Made by a program: the position numbers and the translations under genes
Origin: Geosiphon pyriformis uo1
Lineage: Eukaryota > Fungi > Glomeromycota
DNA length: 58,459 bases
NCBI GenBank assembly: GCA_016748015.1
Contig: JAAOMT010000239.1
Coordinates: 30,359 to 88,817 of the forward strand
Reading direction: 5' to 3'
Part shown: piece after piece, positions 2,835-36,382 of the stretch
How positions within the stretch are numbered: the stretch's first letter is position 1
How the letters are laid out: each line of letters begins with the position of its first letter
Notes under the pieces: generated by a model
What the model was told of the DNA's origin: nothing
What the model saw: the letters and a program-made list of their open reading frames with translations, nothing else
The model's database searches: none

Positions 2835-5800
2835 ATGATGCTTGTCAATGAACCTAAGAAAGAAATTGGTGAGTATCTGAAAAGTGAGAAAAAAAGGGGT
2901 AAAAAATCACTATAAATTGTTCAAACGTTGTCAAAAATTTTATAATATAAATATTTAATCAGACAGTCTCATATTATATTTATACAAGCGCGAAGGCAAA
3001 CCGAGTTACGATTCAGCCCTGAAGCGCCTGGTGAACAAGAACAAACTACGTCATTTTCTCAATCGGGGTTTTTTCCTGATCTCCCACCTTCGGTAGAAGA
3101 GAATATTGTTAAAGGTATTATAAAAGAATCAATTGTATGTCTAAAATCGCAGCGTAGTATTCGACTTTTGACGAAAAATGATTGCTAAAGACCAGAAACC
3201 TATCGGCATTGGCTTGTGGGAAAACGATGAGGAAAACGTTATTGATGAGATGGAAATTGACTTCCTTAAGCAAGAAAGTCAAATCGGTGGGCAGAGCGCT
3301 ATCAGTTGTGATCCTTGTGAATCAATTCCGGGGCTTTATCGTCTATTAGACTTATGCAAAGACGAAGGATCGAACGGTCTTGGTGCGTGAATACTTTCTG
3401 AGATTTTTTTAGTATTAAGCTTAGATCTAATTGAGCTATTTTTTAACTATCGATAATTTCTAGTCGATAAAATTATTATTTCCCAACGTTTCGTAAAGAA
3501 GCTTTGTAACGAGATCGTACCAAACAGCTTCAAATCAATTTCGAAAATTAATTTCAAAAAGCTAAATTCTAAGGAAATTTCCCTTGTTGGAGTTTATGGT
3601 CGAAACGAAATGATTGCTAAATTTCTCTTGAACCAAAATATCATCGATCAGTCTATGTATGACTTCAATTTTTCTAGTTAAGTTTTTTTCTTGATTTTCT
3701 GAGAAATTTTCTCCAATGCATATTTTAGATATGATTCTCTCATTGGCAATGTCGATCAAACCATCAATCAAGAACCCGTCACCTTGCGGCCTGGAATTTA
3801 TCTTCAAAGTTTACTCACCCCTCTTAGATCCAGTGATTTCAATCCTAATCAACTACAATTTCTAGTCATACATTGGAGTGAAGAAGGTTGTTATGACAAT
3901 TTAGCATCTTCTCATCGAAAGAAAAACTTGACCAATATGCATCGGTATGATTTGTCATGGCATTATGTTTCTTTTTTCAGCTCAACTATTATCCAGAGCT
4001 AATAAACGTTTTTTATGAAAAGTTATCTTACTAAATTGACGAGCATCAAATTTGTCTTATGAGTGAGAGGGATTTGGAAAATATTGATTGGCAGGTTTTC
4101 CGCAAAGAATCCCAAACAAATAAATTCTGCCGCGACCTTACGGTTACTAAGTGTCAAGAGCAAAAAGAAGATTTTGAGCTTTTTCCTGGATTTGAGGTGA
4201 TTAATTTTCCTTTTCTTATATCCTAAAGAAACATACATCCCGTAATAAGATTTATCCGTTCGCAAATTAATTGCTCACCTTTTGGAATTATATGAATTTT
4301 ATTAGGTGCAATTACCAAACCATATGACTCGTGAAAACGCTTATTATGACAAGCAGTGTGGAAACTTCGCTCTAGATCCCCTCATAGTTGAATCTGTTAC
4401 AAATCAAACGTTTGTATCGCGAGATATTATCCCAGCAACCAAAGTAAAAAAAGAAGAATCCATAGAATTGGAGGATTTTCGAAGGAAACTAGAAACACAG
4501 AAATATGCCCTTCATCTTACTCGTCAACTAAAAATACAAGATTTGGAAATAATTGTCAACGAAGGATTGAATCTGAATGAAATTTTCCAACCTTTATATG
4601 ATAATTTGAGGGCATTGAAGGAGGTGAAAAATAAGAGCAAAACAAAGCAAAAAGAAAATCTAGAAAAAGGTGCAACGTCTTTGATAAAAGCACCAGTGCA
4701 ATATTTTAAAGATAAATACAGGTACGAAATCTAGAACAATTCGAATTTAACTCAATTTTAAAAATTAATCAGATCTATTTTTGCAGTTACATTGAATCAT
4801 TTTTGCCAACGATTCAATTAAGTTCAAACCTTTCTAAGGTTGACAGGGAATTTGATGAAAGGGAACAAAATTTGGTCAAAACTCATTTCGAAAGGATTTG
4901 CAATGAAGTCGAAAGCAAATATTCCATTGGAGAAAGGCTTACTATCTTAAACGTACAAGTTAAAACATGTAATAATCTTATACGTCTTGTCTCTCTTCGC
5001 ATATTTTCTTAACCGCTTTAATGAATTCTCATTTCTCAAATATAGCGAAGTACCCTCTCAGTCGTTCTTTTACGATATTCCGTGAAATTGAAGTCACTCA
5101 ACCTACCTTAGTTCGCACCACAATTCACACGGCTGAATTAAGTGCTGAAGATAATTTGCAATTCAATAAAGATCATTCCTTTATACCACAGCCATATTTA
5201 CATTCTTTGACTACCTCATTTGAGTTTGATCCCGAGACCTATGAACTAAGGTTGCTTTTTGACTTAAATCTAACTTTTAACATGTTAACACTAGCTCACT
5301 TATTCTTGTTTATAGACACATCTCACAATTAGAGAATAAAAAGCTCCTGGTATTTCTTTGGAATAAATCAACATTTAAGCTTGAAATATATTTTGATACA
5401 ATCAAACGGCTACCTAAGATTATTCGTGATCAAGCTGCGTCGAAAAAACTCAATATAGATGAACAGTTTCTTTTAGCGGTTAATCAACCTAAAGGATTAA
5501 TAGCCATATATAACACCGAGAAAGCTGTGGTATGTATTGATCACTTCAGGTTTTCGTTAGTAATTATTATAGATAGCAAATTAATCTACTATCTGATCGT
5601 TTTTCCAGCTCAATACCTATGCCTTTGATCAAGAGCAAGGGACTCTTTCTTTGCATTATGCCAATATCCTACTCTTGCATTTTTATAAGAATTTAGTTCC
5701 CAAAATAGCACATTTTTTCTTCATTCAAAACACCGAAGATATTTGCTTTGTAGAGAAAAATGGCACAGCCAAAATTTATAACTTGACATGCGACAGATTC

Positions 5801-8800
5801 CGACCGAGAATTGCTCAGTTTCCGTCAGATTCGAAGAAAGTCTTGAGCACCCCTGATGGGACATGTATCGTTGCCTTTGTAAAAGAACAAATAAAAATAC
5901 CTCCCGAGGAAAACGAAATGCGGGATCCTCCTCAAGATGAAATCCAAAGCGAAAATTTAATAGACAAAACAATAAACTTGGTGGACGTAAAAAAAATTCC
6001 TAACTATCAAAAAAATGTCTCAAACCAGCTTGAAAAATCAAAGGATCCAGATCTTAATAATGAACAAGTAATTGATCGCACTGAAAATGCTGCGAAAATT
6101 CAAGTTGCTAAAAAACCACAGGTGGCAGCAGAGGGTTCAGGAAATTATATTACCAAAGGATACATATATTTTACTGAAAATTTCAAACAAGATGCTCACA
6201 AAATTGTCGAGATTCCATTAGAACACTCTTCAATTGAAAATTTCGAGTTTTCCATGTTGAATAAAAAACAAACTCATCTTACAACAATCGATCGGGAAAA
6301 GGCTATTTACCATTCAGTCATGGTCAAAATATCTCATGGAAAAACTCAATTCCGATTGGAGCGCCAGTCACAAAGCAAATTTTTGGGTCAAGTTAAGTTA
6401 GAAGGTCAACGACCTTGTACCGTTGATGGCAAAAGCACAAAATTCATGCGTGATATTCGTGTTGGCGATTTTTTGATTTTGGGCGAGAATAGGCTGCAAG
6501 TGGCTGAAATACTGTCCGACACTCTTCTTAAAATATCACCTCAGACCCCTCAATTTGTCAAATTTGAATACAGCATATGGAAAGATTTCAGGATTGAGCA
6601 AAGAAATACAGTTAATCGACTGATCGATGTTTATTCCATGGTATTCACCAAATATGCCACCAAAAGTCCAATTGGTCGTGTAGATCAACCTTTGACATTG
6701 ACCATTGTATTGGATATTTCTCCCGAGAATCGTTTGAATTTGAAAGAGTACAAAAGAAAATTTCAAGAATATGTTCAGAAAATGTTTTCTATGTTTAAAA
6801 AAGACACGAAAAAATCAATGGGTCATTTGAAGCAGTTCAATACTAAGCTCATGACTTTCCAAGAATTTGATGATTTTGAGGTACACGCTAACAAGTACAA
6901 ACTCGGGGAGTAGGTTTTCAATTCTTTTTCTTAGTCCTTTGCCCTCACTTTGTTGAAGAAAATTCAAAATTTTTTATTCAATGTGTACAAAGATGGATGG
7001 TCGATTTCTTTTGCTTGATTCCGCTCCAGATTGCTGTTGCCCGAGATAATGTATTTGTTCCGTTTCAAGATGGTTTATCTACCATTGATATCGACGAACC
7101 TTTATTAGATGATGGATATGGGTTCATCAGCAGCGTCAGCAAGACTATTTCATTTGGTTGGTACGAGGCCATATTTAAACATTATGCTAATCTTGAAGTG
7201 AAAGTTGTTTCATCAATGGGGGAACAATCGTGTGGTAAGTTGTATTCTATGCAGCAAAAATTTTATTGAAATATCTCTAATTTGTGTTTTATTCTTTGAA
7301 ATTCAAAAGGAAAGAGTTATTTTTTAAACCATTTTGTCGGTTCAACCTTTGATGGATCTGCAATGGTTTGTTTAGAGTGAGATATCAATGTCTGAATTCA
7401 GAATTTTAAACGTGATATTAAATCTTGCTTGAAAATAAATTCACTAATTAGCGTTGTACTGAAGGCGTTTGGATGTCTTTGGGTGAGTAAGATTCAATTT
7501 AATCAGTCTTTTCTCAAAGTTTTTTCTGCGTATAAAAAACTTAGTCTTAAGTATAACCATGATCATTCTTTTTAACACTAGTTAAAACCGACGACATTCT
7601 TTATGTAGCCCTTGACTTTGAAGGTTGTAGACTTCTCAATTTTACACTTTAAATTACTGATTTTCAAAATTTCCAATGACCATGAACAATTGTTTGTAAT
7701 TTCAGGGTTTGCCAGTATCGAAAGAACCCCACAAGAAGAAACATTTTTACAACTCTTGAATGCTGCAGTCTCGAACCTTGTATTATTTAAAAGTCGATTC
7801 ACCATAAGCCGAGATATCTCAACTATGTTTCAAGGCTTCCAAGATGGGATGAATTATTTTGGCGATGATCTAGACATTTTCCAGGTGATGAGTTTTATCT
7901 AGCATATATTTCTTTCTCTTTTGAGGTGGATTTAATGTTTACACGCTGGCTCTTCGCGGAATAAATTTTCATGAATAGGCAAGATTTTGTATCATCATTA
8001 CAGATGTAGCAGAACCAGATCAAGAAGATGTTACATCCGAGTTTGAGTCAAAACTTTCGAGAATTGTTGATAAGGTAGATCAAATTGCTCAAATCCCTCC
8101 TTTCAAATTAAATTAAACTAAATTTTTTTGGATACTATAGGACGAAGAAAATAATTTCATAACAAAGCTCTATGCCAATAATTTGAGTGTAATCCCATGG
8201 CCAGTTTTCAAAGAAGCTTCCTTTTACGAAAATTTCGTGGACTTGAAAGATAAATTTGATCCAGATTCTAAGTACGAGAATACACGAATCTTTGTTGAGA
8301 AACTTAAGGTAAAGTTGAGAATAAATTTTTTCAATGTTTGCATGAGCATTATGTTTAATTAACAGTTTGAAATTATCCCTTACAAGATTCTAATGACAAA
8401 GCTAAAGTACAGTAAAACTTTTTGTTTCTTTTTGGTTCCATTATTTTTTCATTGACTTAATTTTGTTTATATTCAGAGTTTGCGATTGGGGTAGTGTCCA
8501 GGCAACATTAATTACTATCCGCACTTTAGAATTGAAGAAATATTTGAAGAATGCAATATCATATGGATTTGAACAAAAAGAAGACTTTGAGCTGGATATT
8601 TCTATCGAAAACACATTATCAAACACTAATTCATTTGAAAATGAATTAAAATTGAATATTAAACATCTTATGGTATATTGAAAAGTTCTAATGCTTTTTT
8701 GGAAAACTAGCTATTGGAAATTAAAATTTGTAAATTTTTTAGAGTCGTGATGATGGGCAATTAATTCCTGACCCAGAAGTTTTGCTCGTTGAAATATTTC

Positions 8801-11800
8801 ATGATACACGTATTAGGGATGGCTCAATAAAACTAATGCCTGATTCTGGCCTGGTTTTATTAAAGGACGGGATGACGCTTACAAACCTTTCTTCTGGTTA
8901 GTAATATAACATCATTAACAAGTCTCCCTTTTATTTTACAACTCGTTTTGAAAGATAAAATTAAGTGTAATTTTTCTTTAATTCAAGATATCCTAGGCTT
9001 TTTTGAGGAAAAAATACAAGCACGTTCCATAATTCCTGATTCTCAATGGCTAGAGCAGCTCGAGACTTTTGTCAAATTTATCATCCAAAGACGTGTCAAA
9101 CGTGTACAGCAATGGTTTGCACGGAATACCAATCGTTTCGAAAAGGAACAGAATGAAATCATTATCACAAACTATGTCTTTGAGCAAGAAATCAGCAGAC
9201 TAAGTTTATTCTGGAATTTTTGTCGTCTTCGGTGTAATAGTTGTGGGCTTTTATGCATGAAAGCGAGTCGTCACAGTGATAATGAGCAGGACATGACTCA
9301 TGACTGTTTGACTGATCACAAATGTCATTCAGAATGTCAATTTAGTGAAGCTCATTTAAATCAAACTATACCAAAATGTAATCAGTTTGCAGGTCACGAG
9401 GGTGGTCATGCTTGCGAAAAAAGTCATGCCTGCGGTGCTTCTTGCATTTATGATGGGAAAAGAAATTGTCAGTTAAAATGTGCCAAAGACATTGGCCATG
9501 GGTCAACTAGTGGAAATAAAGATCATTTATGTGGGGCTACACGTCATTATTGCGGATCTCCGTGTTCATTGAAGACCAAGACACAAAAGGGGGAATACGA
9601 ATGTCACAATACTTGCATTGTAAGCCTCTGCTTTAAATTTTTTTCTTGATTTTTAAAAGCTTTATTACATGTACTTCTTTTTTATTTAATTTAATTTATC
9701 AAACAGATTCCATGTGAAGAAATTCATTCAGTTCATAAATGTGAAAATGAAGTTTGCCCTCTTGAATGTCCAATAAGCAATTGCCATCGACGATGCGAAA
9801 GCAAAGATCATTTTCATGACTTAGAAGGAGGCATTGACCATTTTTGCGGGTGATATAGTGGTTCTAAATGACTAATAAAAAACAGACCTTTTAATATGAC
9901 AAAATTAATAACAAGTTGTGAAAATTATCTAACTTTATAATAATCTAGTGAGGAACATCAATGTGCCGAAGATTGCGAAGAAAATGGGATCTGCAAGATT
10001 ATTACTGAGCCAACAGCTATTAAAGATGAATATGTCAACAAATTTGGTAGTTTCATGTATACTAAAGTAAGAGTTTTTGGTTTGAGTTTAATGAAAAATC
10101 TGCAATTGTTGTTAAAATAAGGCTTAGCTAATTGAATTACCGTTTGGAAAATATTTAGTATTTGCAAAAAGATGAAAAACTTCCATGCTGCATTAAAATT
10201 CCTCCCTACAAATTCAAGCATGATGGAAAACATGTACATGAAGAAAAGAAAGAACATAAATTCTCTCGAGATTGTCCGTCTGATATGGGGCTCCACATAA
10301 AGGAGGAGGAAAAAAAGCAATATAATTTTCATTATTGCGATGTAAAATGTCCGAATTGCAGTTATTATGTAAGTTTTTATGAATTTTATTATGTTATGAT
10401 TTTTTTGAACACTCTGAACCGTTTCAAATTTACTTCAGTGTACATTGCCATATGATCATGGCCGAGATTGCAACAGTCAACATAGTAAGCAAAAAGTTTG
10501 ATTCCACCATTGGAGTTGCAAACATTTAAGTTGTAATTCAATGAATTTTTAAATAGACACCGTACATGGAAATATGTATTCGACAACTTTTACGTGCGAA
10601 GAAGAAAATTTTGAGTTTGAAGGTAAATAATCGAATTGGTAGGTCTTCGAGTTAAAAAGACCTTATTCGTTAACTAAAAATCTATTTTTCACCATTTTAG
10701 GACATCGGTTGACTCTGGGAGATCGCGGTGATTTTGTTCTTTGTCATAAAGTGAGCAGTTGTTTTTTAATAATGAGTTTATCCAGTAAGTAATCAAATTG
10801 AATTGTTCTGTAGCTTTGTGAGAACATAGGCAGGCATCGTCATATCGAATACTGCAAAAATCCTAATGTTTGCGAAGCCGATGGTGAATTGAAAAAGGAA
10901 GGAATTCTTGAACACATCAATGGTAGAAAATACTAAAGCTTTTAAATTTCCAACAACCAGAACGAAATTGAATGACATTTTTATGTAATAGCTGCCATAA
11001 GTCCAAACCCTGATCGAAAAAAAGATTATGTTTCGCATAAAGTGTATTGGGACCGAACTAACTTTCAAGGTAAACTTTTTACCATATTAATTACCACTCT
11101 ATTCAATATCGAGTTCTAATAGATAATTTATGATATTTTTCAAGACCCATACTCTAAAGATAACAGAGAAAATTTCAAGAAATGCGATCATGAATGCCCA
11201 GATGAAAAGCATAAGATTGACAAGGCTACCAGAAAAGATTATGTTAGATCATTTTGCACTCAAAATATCTTTCATGCAAAGCTAGATCATAAAAAGGCTC
11301 TCCCTGAAAACAATGGATATATTTCAATAGACGGCCATCATTTTGATTGCGAAAATCCGGTAAAAACTATTGGAGACTTTCATATTATATTTGTGGTCGA
11401 TTCCAGCAGCTCCATGATATATGATGATTGTAAACCTCGTTGTGACAGCACCGAAACACTTCGACTCTTGGATTCTCATAAGAATCGGCTTGGAGCCGTT
11501 TATGAAGCTTGTTATACATTTATTGAGGCGCGTAAAAGTTCTCGCAAGAATACAACCGCTGGACAATCAGCTATTGATCGCGACACTACATCTCTTGTAC
11601 TCTTTTCAGACACGGCAAAAGTGGCATTTGAGAATCGAAGCCTCTCGAATTCCGATGAGCTTTTAGAAAAAATGATGCAATACCGACCATTGGGTGACAC
11701 CAGTTATAAAGCAGGAATTCTGAAAGTTGCCGATATTATTAATCAACACTATGATTCGAAAAAGTAAGGTCCATCTTAATTTTCTAATTCTTTTAAAGTT

Positions 11801-12303
11801 AGTATTTATTGAAAAACCAAAAATGTTCTCTAGAACAAATGTCATTGTTTTCTTATCTGACGGCGAAGATCATGCTCCTGAAAGTGAATTGAGAAATCTT
11901 TGTCAACGGGAAGCCAACAGAGGGTAAATTGATAAGCAATATGACTAAAATCGATAAAAACATTTTAATGCTTAAAATTTATCACTTTTTTTTTCTGCAC
12001 AGTTCGCCATTGTTATTGTATACAATTAAGTTCACTGGTGTAAGTGACTCTCTAGGTAAAAAAATCAAAAGGTGGGGAGATTATGTAACTGGTAAAGGTG
12101 ACTCCCGAGATCAATCGCTTCTAAAAATGGCAGATATTGCAACTGAATATCTTCCAAAAGGAGATTCAAAAGATGCGCTCAAATCTCAATATGTCCTGGC
12201 GGTAAACGAGATTGAGCTCATCGAGCATTTTACTGAAGTTGCAAGCAGTCTACGCAACCATCAACCAATGTTGATCAGTGAAAATATAAAAATTAGTCGT
12301 TGA
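2835..12303 (+). CDS. Giant multidomain protein (~2,250 aa, 33 exons): unknown N-terminus, VLIG/GBP/RHD3-like GTPase, Cys/His-rich region, C-terminal VWA; one apparent frameshift at ~4039
   Basis: Manual GT-AG splicing from ATG 2835 to TGA 12303 keeps the frame except at ~4039. G1 MGEQSCGKS spans intron 7235-7309; G2 RCTEG is in exon 7452-7482; G3 LDFEG starts in exon 7582-7623. Cys/His repeats run ~9220-11360. The MIDAS motif VDSSSSM...GDTSY...LSDGED lies at ~11395-11870. Confidence 0.88.
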
Positions 12304-14328
12304 TTAATCATCGCAGAGATAAATCTCCAAATGATGAAAATTTTTATTATTAATACTAAAGATGTTTAAATGATTTCGATTTCAATAGGAAACCCGTTTC
12401 TGAAGTCATAAAAAATGGGGCAATAAAATCAATAAAATGTTTATTGTTCTATTATTACAGAGGAAATCTATTAATATTGCCATGTGTTTGATTTTCCAAA
12501 AAAATAGGCAAGAAAAGGTTAAATTATTCAGAAGATAATAATTGCACAAGGATCAATGTAGAAAAAATGAAAAGTGAAATGCTATGAACCCTCAAACATT
12601 AAATTGATATGCTGAATGTTTTAATGATTTAAAGTTTAGCTCAAAAAAATGGTTTTCGATAATTTTTACAAGCTATCACATTATCTTAAATTTTCAGATT
12701 TAGATAATAAAAATTATTTTTTATATATATTAATTTAATTTGTAGTTTTATTATGAATTTATCTCTAAGTTCAAAAAGATAAATAATTAGTAATAAGTAA
12801 AAATATAATTTAAATTACTTATTATTATAAAATTAAATCTTTTATTATTTATTTGTTTGCAAAGCTAATAAAAAAATAAAAATTTAACTTTATTTCAAAT
12901 TTTTGTTAACAGCTGTTATAAAAAATTTTATTTAATAATTATGTAGTTTTATTTTTTAAAAGTATTTAAAATTAGATAATAATCATTATGTTTTATAATA
13001 AGTTAAAAAAATCTGTATATATAATTTATATTTAAATAGTTTTTTATTTAATTATTAATAAAAAAAAATATTTATATTATATTAATTTAATATTGTTATA
13101 ATTAAAAAAACATTTTTAGTTAATAAACTTTTTATAAATAAATAAATTTTATTCTTAAATAATAAAAATATAATAGATAAATTACAATTTAAGTTTTTAT
13201 TTATTTTTAAAAATAATTCAAAATTATATATAATCAGAATAAAAATAAGTTTATGATATCTTATTTTAATATTAATGTAAATAATTATATTATATTTAGA
13301 ATTTAAATAACATAAATCTTAATTTATTTTTTAAAGTTATAATTTAAATTAAACTTGGAATTTCAGAGTAATTTAGAATTTTTTAAAATTTATATGTTTG
13401 TTTAATTATAAATTTAAAAAATAACAAATTAATTTTTTATTTAATTATATAAACAAAAAAACAAAAGAATTAAAATTGTAAAAAATATAATTTTATCAAT
13501 TAACAATAATATTAAGTATTTTAAAAATACATTAATAACAGAGTATAAATTTTGTTTATTACTTTATTGAATATTTTAATAATAATAATATAAATAATTA
13601 ATAAAATTTGTTTATCACTTTAATAAATTTTATACAATAAAATTTTTTATTATAATTATATATTTAGCTAACTAAATATAAATGTATATAAGTAATAATT
13701 AATTTTTATTGAATTTAGTTAAAATTACTTTTAATCTACTAATATATAATAATAATAACTTATTTTAATTTTTTAAATAAACTTTTTTTTAATTTTTCAA
13801 CTTAAAAATAAATTTAGAATAAAACTATATATTAAACTATTGAAAAATATATACAAATAAAAAATAAATATCAAAATTAAAAAATACTTTGATTTTATTA
13901 TTTTTAAAACTTATTTGTAAAAATTTAATAGCATATTTAATTTTAAATGTTCATACTTTTTATTTTTGAGTTTTTATTTATGTTTTTTTTTGTTCTTTTT
14001 ATTATTTTTTGTACTATTTTCTCATGTTATAATTATTTTTATTGTTATTAACAACAATTTGTCACTTTGTTTGTAATTAAAATATTATTTTAATATTAAA
14101 AAATTGGGTTTTTTTAAAATAATTTAAACTTTATTTTTATTTTATATGAATTTGTAGAGTCTAATAGTTTACCAAAATAATTTTTATTTTATATGAACTT
14201 ATAGAGTCTAATAGTTTGCAAAAACAATTTTACATTATTTTATTTATATTAATTTTAAAAAATGTTGAATATTTACAAGCAAAACAATTATTAAAACTGT
14301 AAATTAATTATTATTTTTAACTTTAAGA

Positions 14329-16475
14329 TAGAATTCTGATTGAATCATATCAAATCAAACTTTAAGTGTTGTTCAAGTTTGATTCGAATTATAAACCGAA
14401 CTTGAATTGAACCAATTTTTCAAAGTAAGTTCAGTTTGAGTTTAACATTGAATCTTTTAACAAGTCTAAGTTCAGTTCAAGTCTGATTTAAAGTTCACAA
14501 ACTTGTGGCTTAAGTTGGTTTTCATCATTGCTTTAGAGCTAAATTTTTGGCATTAGCATTATCTGAGGCTTAGAGTTATCACAGTGCCCATATCATTGAA
14601 AACCACATTTTCTTAATATTAGCTTAAGTGGTTTTCATCATTGTCTTAAGCAAAATTTTCAGCCAAAAAGGTTAAGAAAAAAGATTAAAAAAGAGTTATA
14701 CTCACCCTCTTTTTATACGAGTTTACCATTAATTTTATTAGTTATAACCTAATTTTTTTTTAACAGCTTCTTGTTATTACCCTCAATAATACTATAGTTA
14801 ATAGTACTTTCATAAGAGAATTAACAGAAAAATTAGAAAAAAAAAACATTTAATGGAGCTCAGAGAACCTTTAATTTTAATGCTTTGATCATATTCTAAA
14901 CTTGGCAGTACAGATGGCTCTAGATGAAATAAAGAATGATGCTCCAAAGTATTTGTTAAAAACCCAAACTGAATATATTTACCTGAAATTTTCCCAATGT
15001 AAACTTTGTATAAATTAAAAATTAGGAAACTTAACTCTGTAATCTATATTTCGCTCCAATGTTTTGAGCTTCTTGAATGTGCCTATAATACATATCAAAT
15101 TAAATACCATAAATATATTCTGAATTGTTCTATCTGATAGAATTTTACTTATGACATGGTTAGGAATGAGTTATTTCTTAAATTAGCAAGTCATTTTTTT
15201 CTGATTCTATATATTTTGAATACAAAAATTCTAACTGTAAATTTATAAGCATTAAACACTCTTACTAGCACTCAAATTAACTTTTATTAATATGCTATTT
15301 CACACAATCAGTGGGCTGTCTTTGATAAAATTGCTAAATTCTTTAAACTATTTAAGAATATTATGGTCAAAATGTTAGCCAGTTCAAATAATACTGCTTT
15401 CTTAATTATTTCTTTCTTTAATATCATTTTTAATCACATTGAAAACACAGTTAATAATAATAAATTTGGTAAAGCATTATAATCTTGATTGTATTTATTT
15501 AGTTATTTATTTAATATATTTAATATTAGATCTATTACTTGTTATAGTGACTAGGGCAGCAAAAAGAAAGTTGGTTAAATATTACTCTAAAACAAATACA
15601 ACTATAATACTTTGTACTGTATTGGATCCAAGAAAAAAATTCTATTATTTCACAAAGAGAGAATTTTTGGATGACAATATTAATAAAATAAAAGAATTAT
15701 AAATTATTAATTTATTCAAACAGTTTTATTTTTCAACTTTCACACAATAAATAAACCTTTAGAATGCATACTTTCTTTGAAACAAAGTACACACTGGACA
15801 TTATACCAATATTAAATGACAGTTTTTTGTTAAATGGCAATTTAATGATATTATAGCATTAGTTACACGATTCATATTAGAGACAGACTTTGATGATAAT
15901 AAAAAAAAAAACTTGATAAAATTGATCATTATATTTCTAAAAAGATAGCCAATAAGAAAATGGATGTAATAGTATGGTAGAAGATTTATTACAAAAAATA
16001 TTTATTTAAATTAACATTTTATTAATAATTCAATATTTAGGCACATCAAACACAATTCCCTTGTCTTACATATATAGCTTATAATTATTTGGCAATTCAA
16101 GAATCATCTGTTGCTTTTAAACACATTTTTTCTGCAGGTGAGAATATGATTACAGATATAAAGTCTCACTTAGTGCCTAAAACTATAAGAGCAGCATAGT
16201 GTCTTCAATTATGGATGCAGAAATTATTACAAGAAAAATTAAATAATAATATAATATAATATAATGTTTTTAATAGTTAAAACTGAACATGTTCATGAAC
16301 TTCGAACTAAACTTAAACCAGACTTGTTGCATGTGTTCAAGTTTGGTTAAGTTCAGTAATTTTAAGTCTGGTTCAAGTTCGAATTTGAAATTTTGCCAAA
16401 TCTTCTGTTCAATTTCAATTCAGTTCGGCAGTTTAATTGAACTTGAACTGAACTAGACTGAACATCAGAACTCTA
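14329..16475 (+). mobile_element. hAT-superfamily DNA transposon, internally deleted and decayed, both ends present
   Basis: TIRs TAGAATTCTGAT (14329) and ATCAGAACTCTA (ending 16475) differ by 1 mismatch. A perfect 8-bp TSD CTTTAAGA sits at 14321-14328 and 16476-16483. Subterminal gttcaa/ttgaac repeats are present. Transposase remnants include LCTVLDPRKK and a C-terminal dimerisation motif YLAIQESSVAFKHIFSAGENMITD..SHL.PKTIRA. Confidence 0.93.
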
Positions 16476-18468: not shown

Positions 18469-19901
18469 TTAAACAAACAAACCTGTTGAAAAATCAACCA
18501 TTTGAGCAGTTAAAAGACGACTTGTATAAATTGCTCCTGGATGGATTATTACTCTGGCTTTTTCTATCTTATCGCGTTTCATAATTTTTTTAGGAAATTT
18601 TATATATTTCGAAAATTTTTTTGAAGTTTTTGTTAGCGAGTTGTCGTCTTCCACATGTTCTTTTATGTACTTTTCTGATTTCTGAAACTCTAAACTATAT
18701 TTATTAAGTCTTTCCAAATTTTCGTAAACTTCTCTGGCAGTAGGACGATTCTCAAGATTAGCTTCCCAACACTTTTCAATTATTTCGGCGATACAAGATG
18801 GAATAAGAGGGGAGATAATTTCAGGTCTTTGACCATTTAAAATACCCATTACAAGAATTTTATCGTGAGAACAATCATGAAAGGGAAGCTTTCCTGTTGC
18901 CAATTCCCATAATACCATTCCTAGACTATAAATATCACCAGCCGTCGTAAACGTTTCTCCTCTTAAAACTTCTGGTGGAATATAGGGAATTACTCCATAT
19001 ATTCCTTTTTTCTCTCCTGTTGTTGTAGTTGCAGCTTTTATTTCAGAGTTTATAGGTCGACATAATCCAAGGTCTCCAATTGATACATCATCATAAGCAT
19101 ATTGTAGAATGTTGCCCGAGTGTAGGTCACGATGAATCATACCAGTATAATGAATAGTCTCAAGTCCTTCAGCTATATATCGCGCGATCGATAATTTATC
19201 AGACCAACTCGCAGAATGAAAATTCGTTGATAAATACTTCCGGATGTCTCCATACTGGGCAAACTCCATCACAACCCCATACTCGAGTGTTTCAGCGTTT
19301 CGTGTAATGCCGTATATTGAAGTGATATTTTGAATATATCCATTATTAATTAACTTTGTTCTTTGAATATTTAACTATCAAAAGAGAAATAAATAAATAA
19401 ATAAAAAATCTTCCAATGATTTCATAATAATAATAATAATAATTAAAACAATAATTTGATTACCTCTTTAAAGACTTCTTCACTATTCTGCAAAGATGCC
19501 TTTATGAATTTTATTGCTACTTCCATTCCTTCTCCCCACCTTTTATATTCCATTGAACTATGATGTTTTATACTAGTTGAATCAATAAATCCATCAATAT
19601 AGGTTGCTTTATAAATTGTACTGAATCCTCCCTCTCCAATTTTCTTGATATCCCATAAACGTATCCATGGTATCCATTCATAGTGATTTAATTCATATTT
19701 ATTATAAACTGGATTCTTAATTATTTCATCAACCACTTTATTGCCACTTGAAAAGTCTTGGTAGATTTTCTCAAAAAATAGGAATCGGCATGCTCCACAC
19801 TTATTCACTTTATTGCTTATAATACTCTTTTGACATCTATTGCATTTATTGCAATCATGAGTAGCTTCTGGGCAAGTTATTTTAATTTCAAGGTTTTCCA
19901 T
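18469..19901 (-). CDS. Tyrosine-kinase-like (TKL) protein kinase with Cys-containing N-terminus
   Basis: Exon 19901-19464, intron 19463-19375, then exon from 19374 in frame. Motifs GEGGFS, VAIK, HRDLHSGN, DLG, PPE, DIYSLG and RPTA are present. A short extra 3' exon near 18370-18400 is possible. Confidence 0.9.
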
Positions 19902-35076: not shown

Positions 35077-36382
35077 ATTATTCAGAATATTATGAAAACT
35101 ACGGACCAATCGATTGGCCTCGACGAATTGAAATTGCGACAGATATTGTTCGTGGCTTGACTTTCCTCCATGAAGTTTCCATTTTGCATCATGACATTCG
35201 AAGCCAAAATATTCTAATAAATAGATATCATGCAGCTAAAATCGCCAATTTTACTCTAAGGTATCGTATGAGATTACATTTATTATTAAAAAAATGCTAT
35301 TGGAAAAGCTAAATATTTTTTATTCGTGTAATCTTTATTCACCAGTCGTAATTATACTGATATAACCTCAGCAATGGCACCAACCTTGGAAACTGTTCGA
35401 TATTTGGCCCCTGAAAAATTATCAGATCATCGTAAAAATCCATACACAACTAAATGTGAAATTTTCAGGTATATATATATTAAAAGTTTGTTTAGATTTA
35501 AAAGCAAAATTAACGTTTTAGCTTAATTCTTTTTTTAGTTTTGGCATATTGCTCTGGGAGATTGCCGAAGAACAGATTCCATACAATGAAAAAACAGATA
35601 TAGTAGAGATTCGTGAGACAGTCCTTAATTCTAAATCACTTCCATTCAGCCTTAATGTTCCCCTAGATTGGCAAAAAATATCTTTGGAAGGTGAATAAAA
35701 AAGTTCTGTATTTTCATAAAATATCCTTTCTTTGGCTCTAATACATTGCATGCATTCTTGGATTGTAAATAGCTACGAGGCATGACCCAAATTTGCGACC
35801 CTCGCTTACAGAGCTATTCACGATACTGATGATGATGATGACCTTGTGATTGATTTGGACATTACGGAGCTCTCTACTGTTTTGTCTGTCGAAGATGCAA
35901 TACAAGAATATAAGAAGAAAGATGGTGACAAAATTATTGCATTTAACGCCTTCCAAAAACATGCTAGTTTTGGAGATTTATATGCTAAATACTGGGTGGA
36001 ATATTATCTCTACTATAATATTAACGGGAATCCATCACAAAATAAAAAGGCTCAAATGGAGAAAGCTGCGGAATATTTCAAAGAAGCTGCGGATAAAGGC
36101 CAAATTCCTGAAGCTCAGCTTCGCTATGGTCATTGTTTGTGGGCCGGTGATGGAGTACAAAGGAGCATTGAAAGTGCCATCAACTATTTCCAATTGGCCG
36201 CTCATAACAACAACATCACCGCCATGTATAATATTGGCAATATATATTATAAAGGATTTGGTATCCCTAAAGATGAAAAAAAGGGAAAACGATATTTAAT
36301 TTTGGCTGCTTTGAAAGGCCAACCAAAAGCGCTGGATATGTGTCGCAAGGAGAATATCCTATTGACCGAAAATTTGGATTAA
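35077..36382 (+). pseudogene. 5'-truncated pseudokinase-Sel1 repeat gene (paralogue of 42360-44661)
   Basis: Starts mid-kinase (EYYENYGPIDW) with HHDIRSQN, KIANFT and RYLAPEK. A frame-breaking deletion lies at ~35823 relative to the paralogue. The Sel1 C-terminus (AQLRYGHCLWAG, AMYNIGNIYYKG) is open to TAA 36382. Confidence 0.88.

Follow-up and report, generated by a model that had tools for sequence, protein, structure and literature searches.

The stretch of Geosiphon pyriformis DNA analyzed here (58,459 nucleotides of contig JAAOMT010000239.1, hereafter the window) carries at positions 2838-12303 of its forward strand what is almost certainly a single gene for one giant protein, in which a predicted pseudo-GTPase fold (D1), a variable linker (D2), a β-propeller, a small β-barrel, a central G domain of the GB1/RHD3 class, a Cys/His-rich module and a von Willebrand factor A (VWA) domain follow one another. 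A first-pass annotation made from the letters alone had proposed one long gene of 33 exons with a GTPase, Cys/His repeats and a VWA domain in that order, and the mapping of a public protein, the collinearity with paralogs and an ortholog and the exon-wise check all agree with this, each listed element lying where it had been placed; the chain is likewise single and giant, although its length had been put slightly low, at approximately 2,250 instead of 2,295 amino acids. When the 420-aa open reading frame (ORF) at 5651-6913 was used as an exhaustive phmmer query, it retrieved the 2,267-aa public protein KAG9300637.1 (P0001; 'hypothetical protein G9A89_023435 [Geosiphon pyriformis]'), which is 100% identical across the query and aligns exactly to 2838-12300 in 30 exons, all of its introns being GT-AG. 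The gene is already deposited, unnamed, and the 33-exon model improves on the deposited one.

The corrected splice model is based on homology to paralogs and orthologs and has a coding sequence of 6,888 nt (2,295 aa and a stop codon); all 32 introns, of 63-119 nt, are GT-AG, in-frame stops are absent and the exon phases connect throughout, as verified exon by exon. Three micro-exons are skipped in the deposited model. The first two carry the last residues of G1 and the whole of G2, and the deposited model, which splices 7234 straight to 7582, is 29 residues short there. Micro-exons 13 and 14 are 92% and 100% identical in DNA sequence, respectively, to the matching paralog exons, the paralogs P0092 and P0093 have 17- and 10-codon exons at these positions, the Rhizophagus irregularis ortholog has introns at exactly the same residues, and the encoded stretch is found in every aligned homolog. 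Micro-exon 26 restores the conserved CTLPYDHG...TVHGNM; since the public model skips it, exon 27 (10557-10622) is misframed there and an implausible 29-nt intron (10623-10651) results. Because KAG9300637.1 lacks the end of G1 and G2, Pfam detects its VWA domain alone and the GTPase goes unseen. Similar P-loop gaps occur in the alignment in other deposited family members, e.g. P0011, P0018 and P0019. On single window exons Pfam gave a weak VWA_2 match only, the exons being too short to score, and the public model and its homologs were therefore used instead, so that searches were run with individual exons, with P0001 and with the intact paralog P0092. An Rfam scan of the window gave no match. 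An annotation chimera of two or more neighboring genes, for example a propeller protein and a GTPase-VWA protein, is scarcely credible given that the same collinear layout recurs in the two paralogs, in R. irregularis, where the exon boundaries coincide, and at full length in more than 150 proteins from chytrids to Agaricomycetes, with linked exon phases throughout the window gene.

The central domain, to judge from its motifs and profiles, belongs to the GB1/RHD3 class of the dynamin superfamily. The G1, G2 and G3 motifs reported earlier are all encoded, in order, and are invariant in 32-37 aligned family members, whereas the G4-like motif, which in the family reads I[K/R/N]DV with an invariant Asp, is ITDV in the window copy and unique in the family. 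The family profile retrieves GBP1 (1.4e-7), GBP2, GBP5 and Sey1 (4e-6) from the PDB, and of 32 family G domains scanned with Pfam all match URGCP_GTPase (best 4e-12) and RHD3_GTPase (best 6.7e-10) and 30 match GBP. The GBP gathering score (21.1) is exceeded by P0035, P0136 and P0148 (25-27 bits), but the URGCP_GTPase matches (PF25683), covering approximately 60-100 model positions around the P-loop, reach 29-37 bits against a cut-off of 55, and those to RHD3_GTPase (PF05879) at most 32.5 bits against 42.4. In the basidiomycete and Basidiobolus members RHD3 outscores URGCP and is the best Pfam match. Both the Pfam and the PDB profile results bear out the class assignment of the first-pass annotation, while its narrower placement closest to VLIG/URGCP is borne out in part: the two-G-domain layout given by the D1 fold speaks for it, the sub-threshold URGCP scores and the better RHD3 match in some members against it. 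Neither is the gene a housekeeping Sey1, as Geosiphon has a separate Sey1 gene (C630:266262-267348) that scores above the RHD3 cut-off and the family is multi-copy; a family nested within a single-copy housekeeping Sey1 is thus not what is found. No NACHT or NB-ARC Pfam domain occurs on any member scanned, and whereas NLR-type receptors have C-terminal repeats, the propeller here lies N-terminal to the NTPase.

The N-terminal domain D1 is predicted, with moderate scores, to adopt a GBP/atlastin-like G fold, which is newly recognized in this analysis; it corresponds to the N-terminal region (YRLLDL...VDKIII) that the first-pass annotation had singled out. An AlphaFold model of D1 from the intact paralog, with a predicted local distance difference test score (pLDDT) of 74, has atlastin-1, GBP1, GBP2, GBP5 and RNF112 as its leading Foldseek matches in the PDB (E 5e-3, prob 0.99); VIA against 48,161 chains is led by GBP1 (Z 7.2), atlastin-1 (6.8) and RNF112 (6.3), with GBP2, atlastin-3 and Sey1 (Z 5.6) also among the leading matches, and in the ESM Atlas GBP clusters take the first three rows. 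Neither sequence nor profile searches of the PDB with D1 gave a match, and an ESM Atlas feature search with it gave none that was usable. The window copy reads GVYGRNEM at the P-loop position, LRPGIY at switch I and HWSEEG at G3, and in alignments the family skeleton G.YG....I..LL /.PG[IL]Y / WPE.G stands against GLYRTGKSYLMNKL / TKGIW / DTEG in GBP1. As GK[ST], the switch-I Thr and the G3 Asp are all missing, D1 is called a pseudo-GTPase. Many Agaricomycete members (e.g. P0144:101-364) have GVYGSKS at the P-loop site of D1, one residue short of the Walker A motif GxxxxGKS, which is possibly a relic of an active ancestor or else a non-canonical nucleotide site.

Between D1 and the central G domain, the linker D2 is followed by a predicted β-propeller that is likewise newly recognized. 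AlphaFold modeling of residues 500-1080 (mfee0ba8d86b7, pLDDT 75) gives a propeller with blades above pLDDT 90, a disordered insert below 40, a small barrel and an α/β piece. Every top Foldseek match of the propeller is a WD40 propeller (E ~1e-5), and VIA places it at Z 11-15 to NHL, WD40, Kelch and TolB propellers, yet Pfam WD40, NHL and Kelch had zero matches on any family member scanned, so that the likeness denotes a fold and not family membership. The secondary structure of the barrel segment comes from the same AlphaFold model, and since phmmer with its exon returned family members only, the segment appears to be family-specific.

The C-terminal part of the protein consists of two conserved modules. 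Exons 22-31 encode approximately 48 Cys and 43 His, and the module proper, approximately 478 aa long, has approximately 45 Cys and 40 His, of which some 60 Cys/His positions in all are conserved across the family; the several hundred residues of Cys/His repeats noted earlier are thus counted as a module of approximately 480 aa. It contains repeated HxC-x3-5-HxC-x3-4-C units and presumably binds zinc. Profile searches found no Pfam family and no PDB relative for it, and an ESM Atlas feature search with it returned fragments of the same family only. The likeness of the units to those of NF-X1 was judged by eye alone, and NF-X1 zinc fingers (PF01422, zf-NF-X1) gave zero matches in 36 Cys/His modules at E up to 5. 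The VWA domain with the complete metal ion-dependent adhesion site (MIDAS) claimed from the start is clearly present: on P0001 Pfam VWA_2 (PF13519) reaches 36.2 bits (cut-off 27) and VWA (PF00092) 23.8 bits (cut-off 23.8), the VWA domains of CLCA1, ITIH4 and CMG2 are its PDB profile matches, and the DSSSS, GDT and SDGE residues of the MIDAS are invariant across the family alignment. In the eight members checked there is neither a transmembrane helix nor a CaaX box, and no hydrophobic 19-mer except one buried strand; the family proteins are accordingly predicted to be soluble, and the membrane attack suggested by the first-pass annotation finds no footing.

Table 1 Features of the giant GTPase gene and its surroundings, in window coordinates.
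Feature	Position	Strand	Basis or remark
Whole gene	2838..12303	+	Exact mapping of P0001; exon-wise checks; full-length collinearity with two paralogs
Exons 1-6	2838-2898, 2989-3114, 3191-3382, 3464-3656, 3729-3944, 4064-4196	+	
Exons 7-12	4306-4721, 4787-4968, 5046-5250, 5316-5529, 5609-6909, 6993-7234	+	
Exons 13-18	7310-7365, 7452-7482, 7582-7626, 7706-7884, 7979-8074, 8141-8308	+	
Exons 19-24	8387-8406, 8477-8672, 8743-8896, 8988-9619, 9707-9849, 9949-10066	+	
Exons 25-30	10159-10368, 10439-10484, 10557-10622, 10701-10750, 10814-10922, 10992-11069	+	
Exons 31-33	11145-11763, 11834-11923, 12003-12303	+	
Micro-exon 13 (56 nt), reads (G)KSYFLNHFVGSTFDGSAM, finishes G1	7310..7365	+	Not in public model
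Micro-exon 14 (31 nt), reads RCTEGVWMSL, bears G2/switch I	7452..7482	+	Not in public model
Micro-exon 26 (46 nt), reads CTLPYDHGRDCNSQH	10439..10484	+	Not in public model
D1 (aa ~90-325), predicted GBP/atlastin-like G fold without P-loop	3271..4359	+	AlphaFold of paralog D1, fold searches
Out-of-frame stretch homologous to conserved YLTKLTEHQICLMS	4027..4063	+	DNA alignment with both paralogs, exon comparison
Junction of ~0.83-kb internal deletion in linker D2, frame kept	4806..4836	+	blastn collinearity jump
Predicted six-bladed β-propeller (aa ~525-889)	5099..6337	+	AlphaFold, Foldseek, VIA
Disordered, non-conserved acidic/basic insert in propeller	5912-6136	+	pLDDT <40
Small β-barrel and α/β segment (aa ~907-1062) between propeller and G domain	6389..6856	+	
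Central GB1/RHD3-class G domain, exons 12-18	6993..8308	+	PDB profile, Pfam
G1 GEQSCG/KS, split over intron	7219-7234 and 7310-7317	+	
G2 RCTEG	7452-7466	+	
G3 DFEG	7614..7625	+	
G4-like position, ITD in window copy	8000..8005	+	Alignment columns
Conserved post-G region up to first Cys cluster, presumed helical	8387..9208	+	Alignment
Cys/His module (aa ~1521-1995 of P0001)	9209..11335	+	Alignment, motif counts
VWA domain with complete MIDAS	11336..12300	+	Pfam, alignment, PDB profile
MIDAS residues: DSSSS; Thr in GDT; Asp in FLSDGE	DSSSS 11399-11413; Asp 11859-11861	+	
Neighboring ORF	18469-19272	-	
Neighboring ORF	35846-36382	+	
Neighboring ORF	48745-49446	-	
Neighboring ORF	50487-51950	-	
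Neighboring ORF	53781-54239	-	

The gene belongs to a large family of proteins of approximately 2,100-2,600 aa. Word-indexed searches retrieved 88 and 190 relatives, and all of those listed with a source name are fungal; the labels of the relatives listed are, with two exceptions, 'hypothetical', 'unnamed' or 'VWFA domain-containing'. The taxa comprise the Glomeromycotina, with many paralogs per genome, Endogone, Basidiobolus, chytrids and very many Agaricomycetes, and no Ascomycota are present among the matches listed. Geosiphon itself has three full copies, the window gene and two located 28 kb apart on another contig (C597), while at least eight copies are found in Diversispora epigaea and four on one contig in Phellopilus; as surveyed, the family is multi-copy without being universal. 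A decayed family fragment spanning the propeller to the pre-GTPase region, with many in-frame stops and deletions and approximately 43% identity to the paralog P0092, lies at C589:92598-95783 on the reverse strand. In a FastTree phylogeny of 159 G-domain regions each taxon group forms one clade and the tree follows fungal taxonomy, the three Geosiphon copies clustering (99) within the Glomeromycotina and the window copy having the longest end branch; this pattern points to vertical descent with local duplication. Among the matches listed, the family can be described from its sequences as confined to fungi, multi-copy, vertically inherited and unnamed. The half from the G domain to the VWA domain retains 35-43% identity between chytrids and mushrooms. 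Pairwise ratios of nonsynonymous to synonymous substitution (dN/dS, ω) between the window copy and the paralogs are 0.30 overall and range from 0.19 to 0.44, the Cys/His module having the lowest value (0.19), followed by the G domain (0.22-0.23) and D1 (0.24-0.27); they indicate purifying selection.

The window copy departs from its relatives at three main places. First, a 1-nt deletion near 4041 in exon 6 misframes the conserved YLTKLTEHQICLMS, a stretch which the public model bypasses via the acceptor 4063/4064; the ancestral exon boundary HR/YLTKLT in Rhizophagus supports this reading of the stretch. The skipped stretch amounts to 14 conserved D1 residues that contribute to a helix and a core strand, and the single-base gap could be either a real frameshift or an assembly error. 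Next, approximately 215 aa of D2 that are kept in the paralogs and orthologs are gone, and tblastn found no counterpart in the window for P0092 aa 486-701 or P0094 aa 367-557. Finally, the G4-like motif has its unique K-to-T change. Together with the longest end branch of the three Geosiphon copies and the existence of the dead C589 fragment, the D1 residues lost unless an alternative acceptor is used, the 0.83-kb D2 deletion and the Thr would suit a decaying paralog, near to or already a pseudogene, of which the gene models would be optimistic reconstructions. Such decay is nevertheless improbable, as 2,295 codons are open across 33 exons with GT-AG at every splice site, all indels relative to the paralogs between the G domain and the stop are multiples of three, ω stays at 0.19-0.27 in D1, in the G domain and in the Cys/His module, and the exon 6 gap may lie in the assembly. 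Moreover, at approximately 250 near-invariant columns the window copy has eight real departures, similar to other members; a further eight are artefacts of the mis-spliced public model.

The surroundings of the gene add little to this picture. The window (contig C788 of the 128-Mb genome) is AT-rich, with exons of approximately 33% GC and intergenic DNA down to 8%, and the region immediately 3′ of the gene (12500-14500) has 8-9% G+C. The neighboring ORFs encode two Tyr/Ser-Thr (TKL-type) kinase domains, two Sel1-repeat arrays, one of them with 10 repeats (E 2e-129), and a Tc5 transposase helix-turn-helix remnant, genes which are typical of the Glomeromycotina and which nothing ties to the giant GTPase gene.

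Several known groups of proteins resemble parts of the family. Intracellular proteins with a MIDAS-bearing VWA domain include midasin/Rea1 and the TFIIH subunit p44/Ssl1, which combines a VWA domain with zinc fingers, and as in these the fungal VWA domain is cytoplasmic, with a full DxSxS...T...D MIDAS beside zinc-type Cys/His clusters, although no sequence relation was detected and the nearest solved VWA domains are those of CLCA1, ITIH4 and CMG2. The P-loop of the family and the ensuing NH..G..F segment are like those of Sey1, and both structural and profile searches list Sey1p among their matches; in contrast to Sey1/RHD3 and the atlastins, however, the family scores below the RHD3 cut-off and has no transmembrane hairpin. 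GBP1, GBP2 and GBP5 (PF02263) are the best solved-structure relatives of both the central G domain and the D1 fold, and their RD-like G4 may correspond to [K/R/N]D in the fungal proteins, which, on the other hand, have no P-loop arginine (GEQSCGKS versus GLYRTGKS) and no CaaX box, are four times longer and differ in the C-terminal half, the GBP match being confined to the approximately 90 residues that start at the P-loop and run slightly beyond G3. GBP-like loci above the cut-off are also found elsewhere in Geosiphon (C708:794760-795155 and C618:35206-35913). The closest known relative, by what it most resembles, appears to be GVIN1/VLIG, GVIN1 being compared by its published description: an AlphaFold3 description of human GVIN1, which coats cytosolic Burkholderia, gives two large GTPase domains (bioRxiv 10.1101/2025.03.24.645074). 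Like GVIN1, mouse VLIG-1 and URGCP, the fungal protein is a giant soluble chain of approximately 2,300 aa with a GxQSxGKS-type P-loop that lacks the GBP arginine finger, and like GVIN1 as described it would have two GBP-like large G folds per chain with a linker between them. Unlike in GVIN/VLIG, the first G domain has no P-loop, a β-propeller lies between the G domains, the C-terminus carries the Cys/His module and the MIDAS VWA domain, and the family is fungal only, with no interferon context. Two Geosiphon exon pairs, at C453:181128-181815 and C666:480476-481161, match URGCP_GTPase positions 139-221 and 245-346 (E 1e-8, under the cut-off) and may represent a second, separate VLIG/URGCP-like family.

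GTP binding in GBPs, atlastins and Sey1 drives head-to-head dimerization of the G domains and higher assembly. From the parts observed here we infer a mechanism in which each step is conditional. The central G domain would bind GTP and pair head-to-head with another G domain, most likely its inactive N-terminal counterpart in cis, which would keep the protein closed. Once a ligand engaged the propeller, the regulatory input, the active G domain would be released to dimerize or polymerize with GTP. At the other end, the rigid Cys/His-VWA part would hold a conserved protein, an acidic side chain of which would bind the MIDAS metal. This GVIN/VLIG-type scaffold, gated by GTP and assembling itself, is the reading we favor and consider somewhat more likely than not, whereas a role in cell-autonomous defense is a good deal more doubtful. 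Several points weigh against the scaffold. The in-cis pairing of G and pseudo-G domains, the sensing by the propeller and the zinc binding are all inferred. D1 resembles G domains in structure alone (Z 5.6-7.2, TM 0.3-0.47) and hhalign found no sequence relation between D1 and the central G domain (D4), so an origin by tandem duplication is unproven and is not claimed. The window copy, if its assembly is correct, has a D1 without the helix and strand, and its G4-like motif, alone in the family, has Thr instead of K/R/N. That the Cys/His module and the VWA domain are so well conserved across fungi as distant as chytrids and mushrooms is easier to reconcile with a fixed cellular partner than with an arms race. 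Finally, literature on VLIG/URGCP in fungi, on GTPase and vWA conflict systems and on six members' locus tags yielded nothing on the family.

Defense was what the first-pass annotation had proposed, in the form of a single-chain immune sensor/effector for non-self recognition. On this reading, invaders would be sensed through the propeller or VWA domain and then attacked or coated by GTP-driven assembly, in the manner of GBP1 and GVIN1. The case for it is one of analogy, drawing on the GB1/RHD3-class G domain and the GVIN1-like layout with two G domains, and it is also consistent with a patchy multi-copy family whose tandem paralogs and decayed fragment resemble birth-and-death evolution, and with no Ascomycota among the matches listed. 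However, the ω of approximately 0.3 between paralogs, lowest in the putative output modules, speaks against such a role, the tree tracks taxonomy with no sign of transfer or fast turnover between phyla, and a membrane anchor is missing. The N-terminal extensions of eight members likewise carry no effector-type Pfam domain above threshold, hence no variable N-terminal effector domains; an ANCHR-like B-box in Dinochytrium kinnereticum P0060:15-54 (E 3.9e-4, 20.9 bits versus 27) is sub-threshold, and the remaining extensions gave no Pfam match. An immune sensor/effector is therefore a tentative proposal that we consider unlikely as it stands.

A rival reading sees a non-immune machine, a factor that uses GTP to remodel or assemble a conserved complex inside the cell and that was lost in some fungi, with Rea1/midasin, through the use it makes of its MIDAS, and Sey1/atlastin as analogues. 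The identity that chytrid and mushroom members retain from the G domain to the VWA domain, the approximately 60 conserved Cys/His positions, the invariant MIDAS, and purifying selection with vertical inheritance would all fit such a factor; the multi-copy state with lineage-specific expansions, as in Diversispora epigaea and Phellopilus, speaks against it, the apparent lack of Ascomycota among the matches listed would be odd for a core machine, and a separate Sey1 is already in the genome. A machine of this kind is possible, but we would not expect it to be the answer. The scaffold of GVIN/VLIG type, which we continue to prefer, could be extended to a kingdom-wide model in which fungal giants of this kind have a dead G domain that gates a live one, a propeller that senses, and a zinc-rich module and MIDAS VWA domain as output, a GTPase-based counterpart of NLRs that would imply that coat-forming immune GTPases predate the split of fungi and animals; this larger claim is rather improbable at present.

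Should the preferred reading hold, the layout of a giant GTPase with two G domains known from human GVIN1 defense would have an old and widespread fungal counterpart, which carries sensor and output modules unlike those of GVIN1. Such a family would offer tractable organisms (Schizophyllum and Rhizoctonia, alongside Rhizophagus) for studying how such GTPases are gated, and would define a Cys/His fold of approximately 480 aa without a known relative. Mis-splicing around the P-loop and switch I, as in the deposited Geosiphon model, may hide further members of the family in other fungal annotations.

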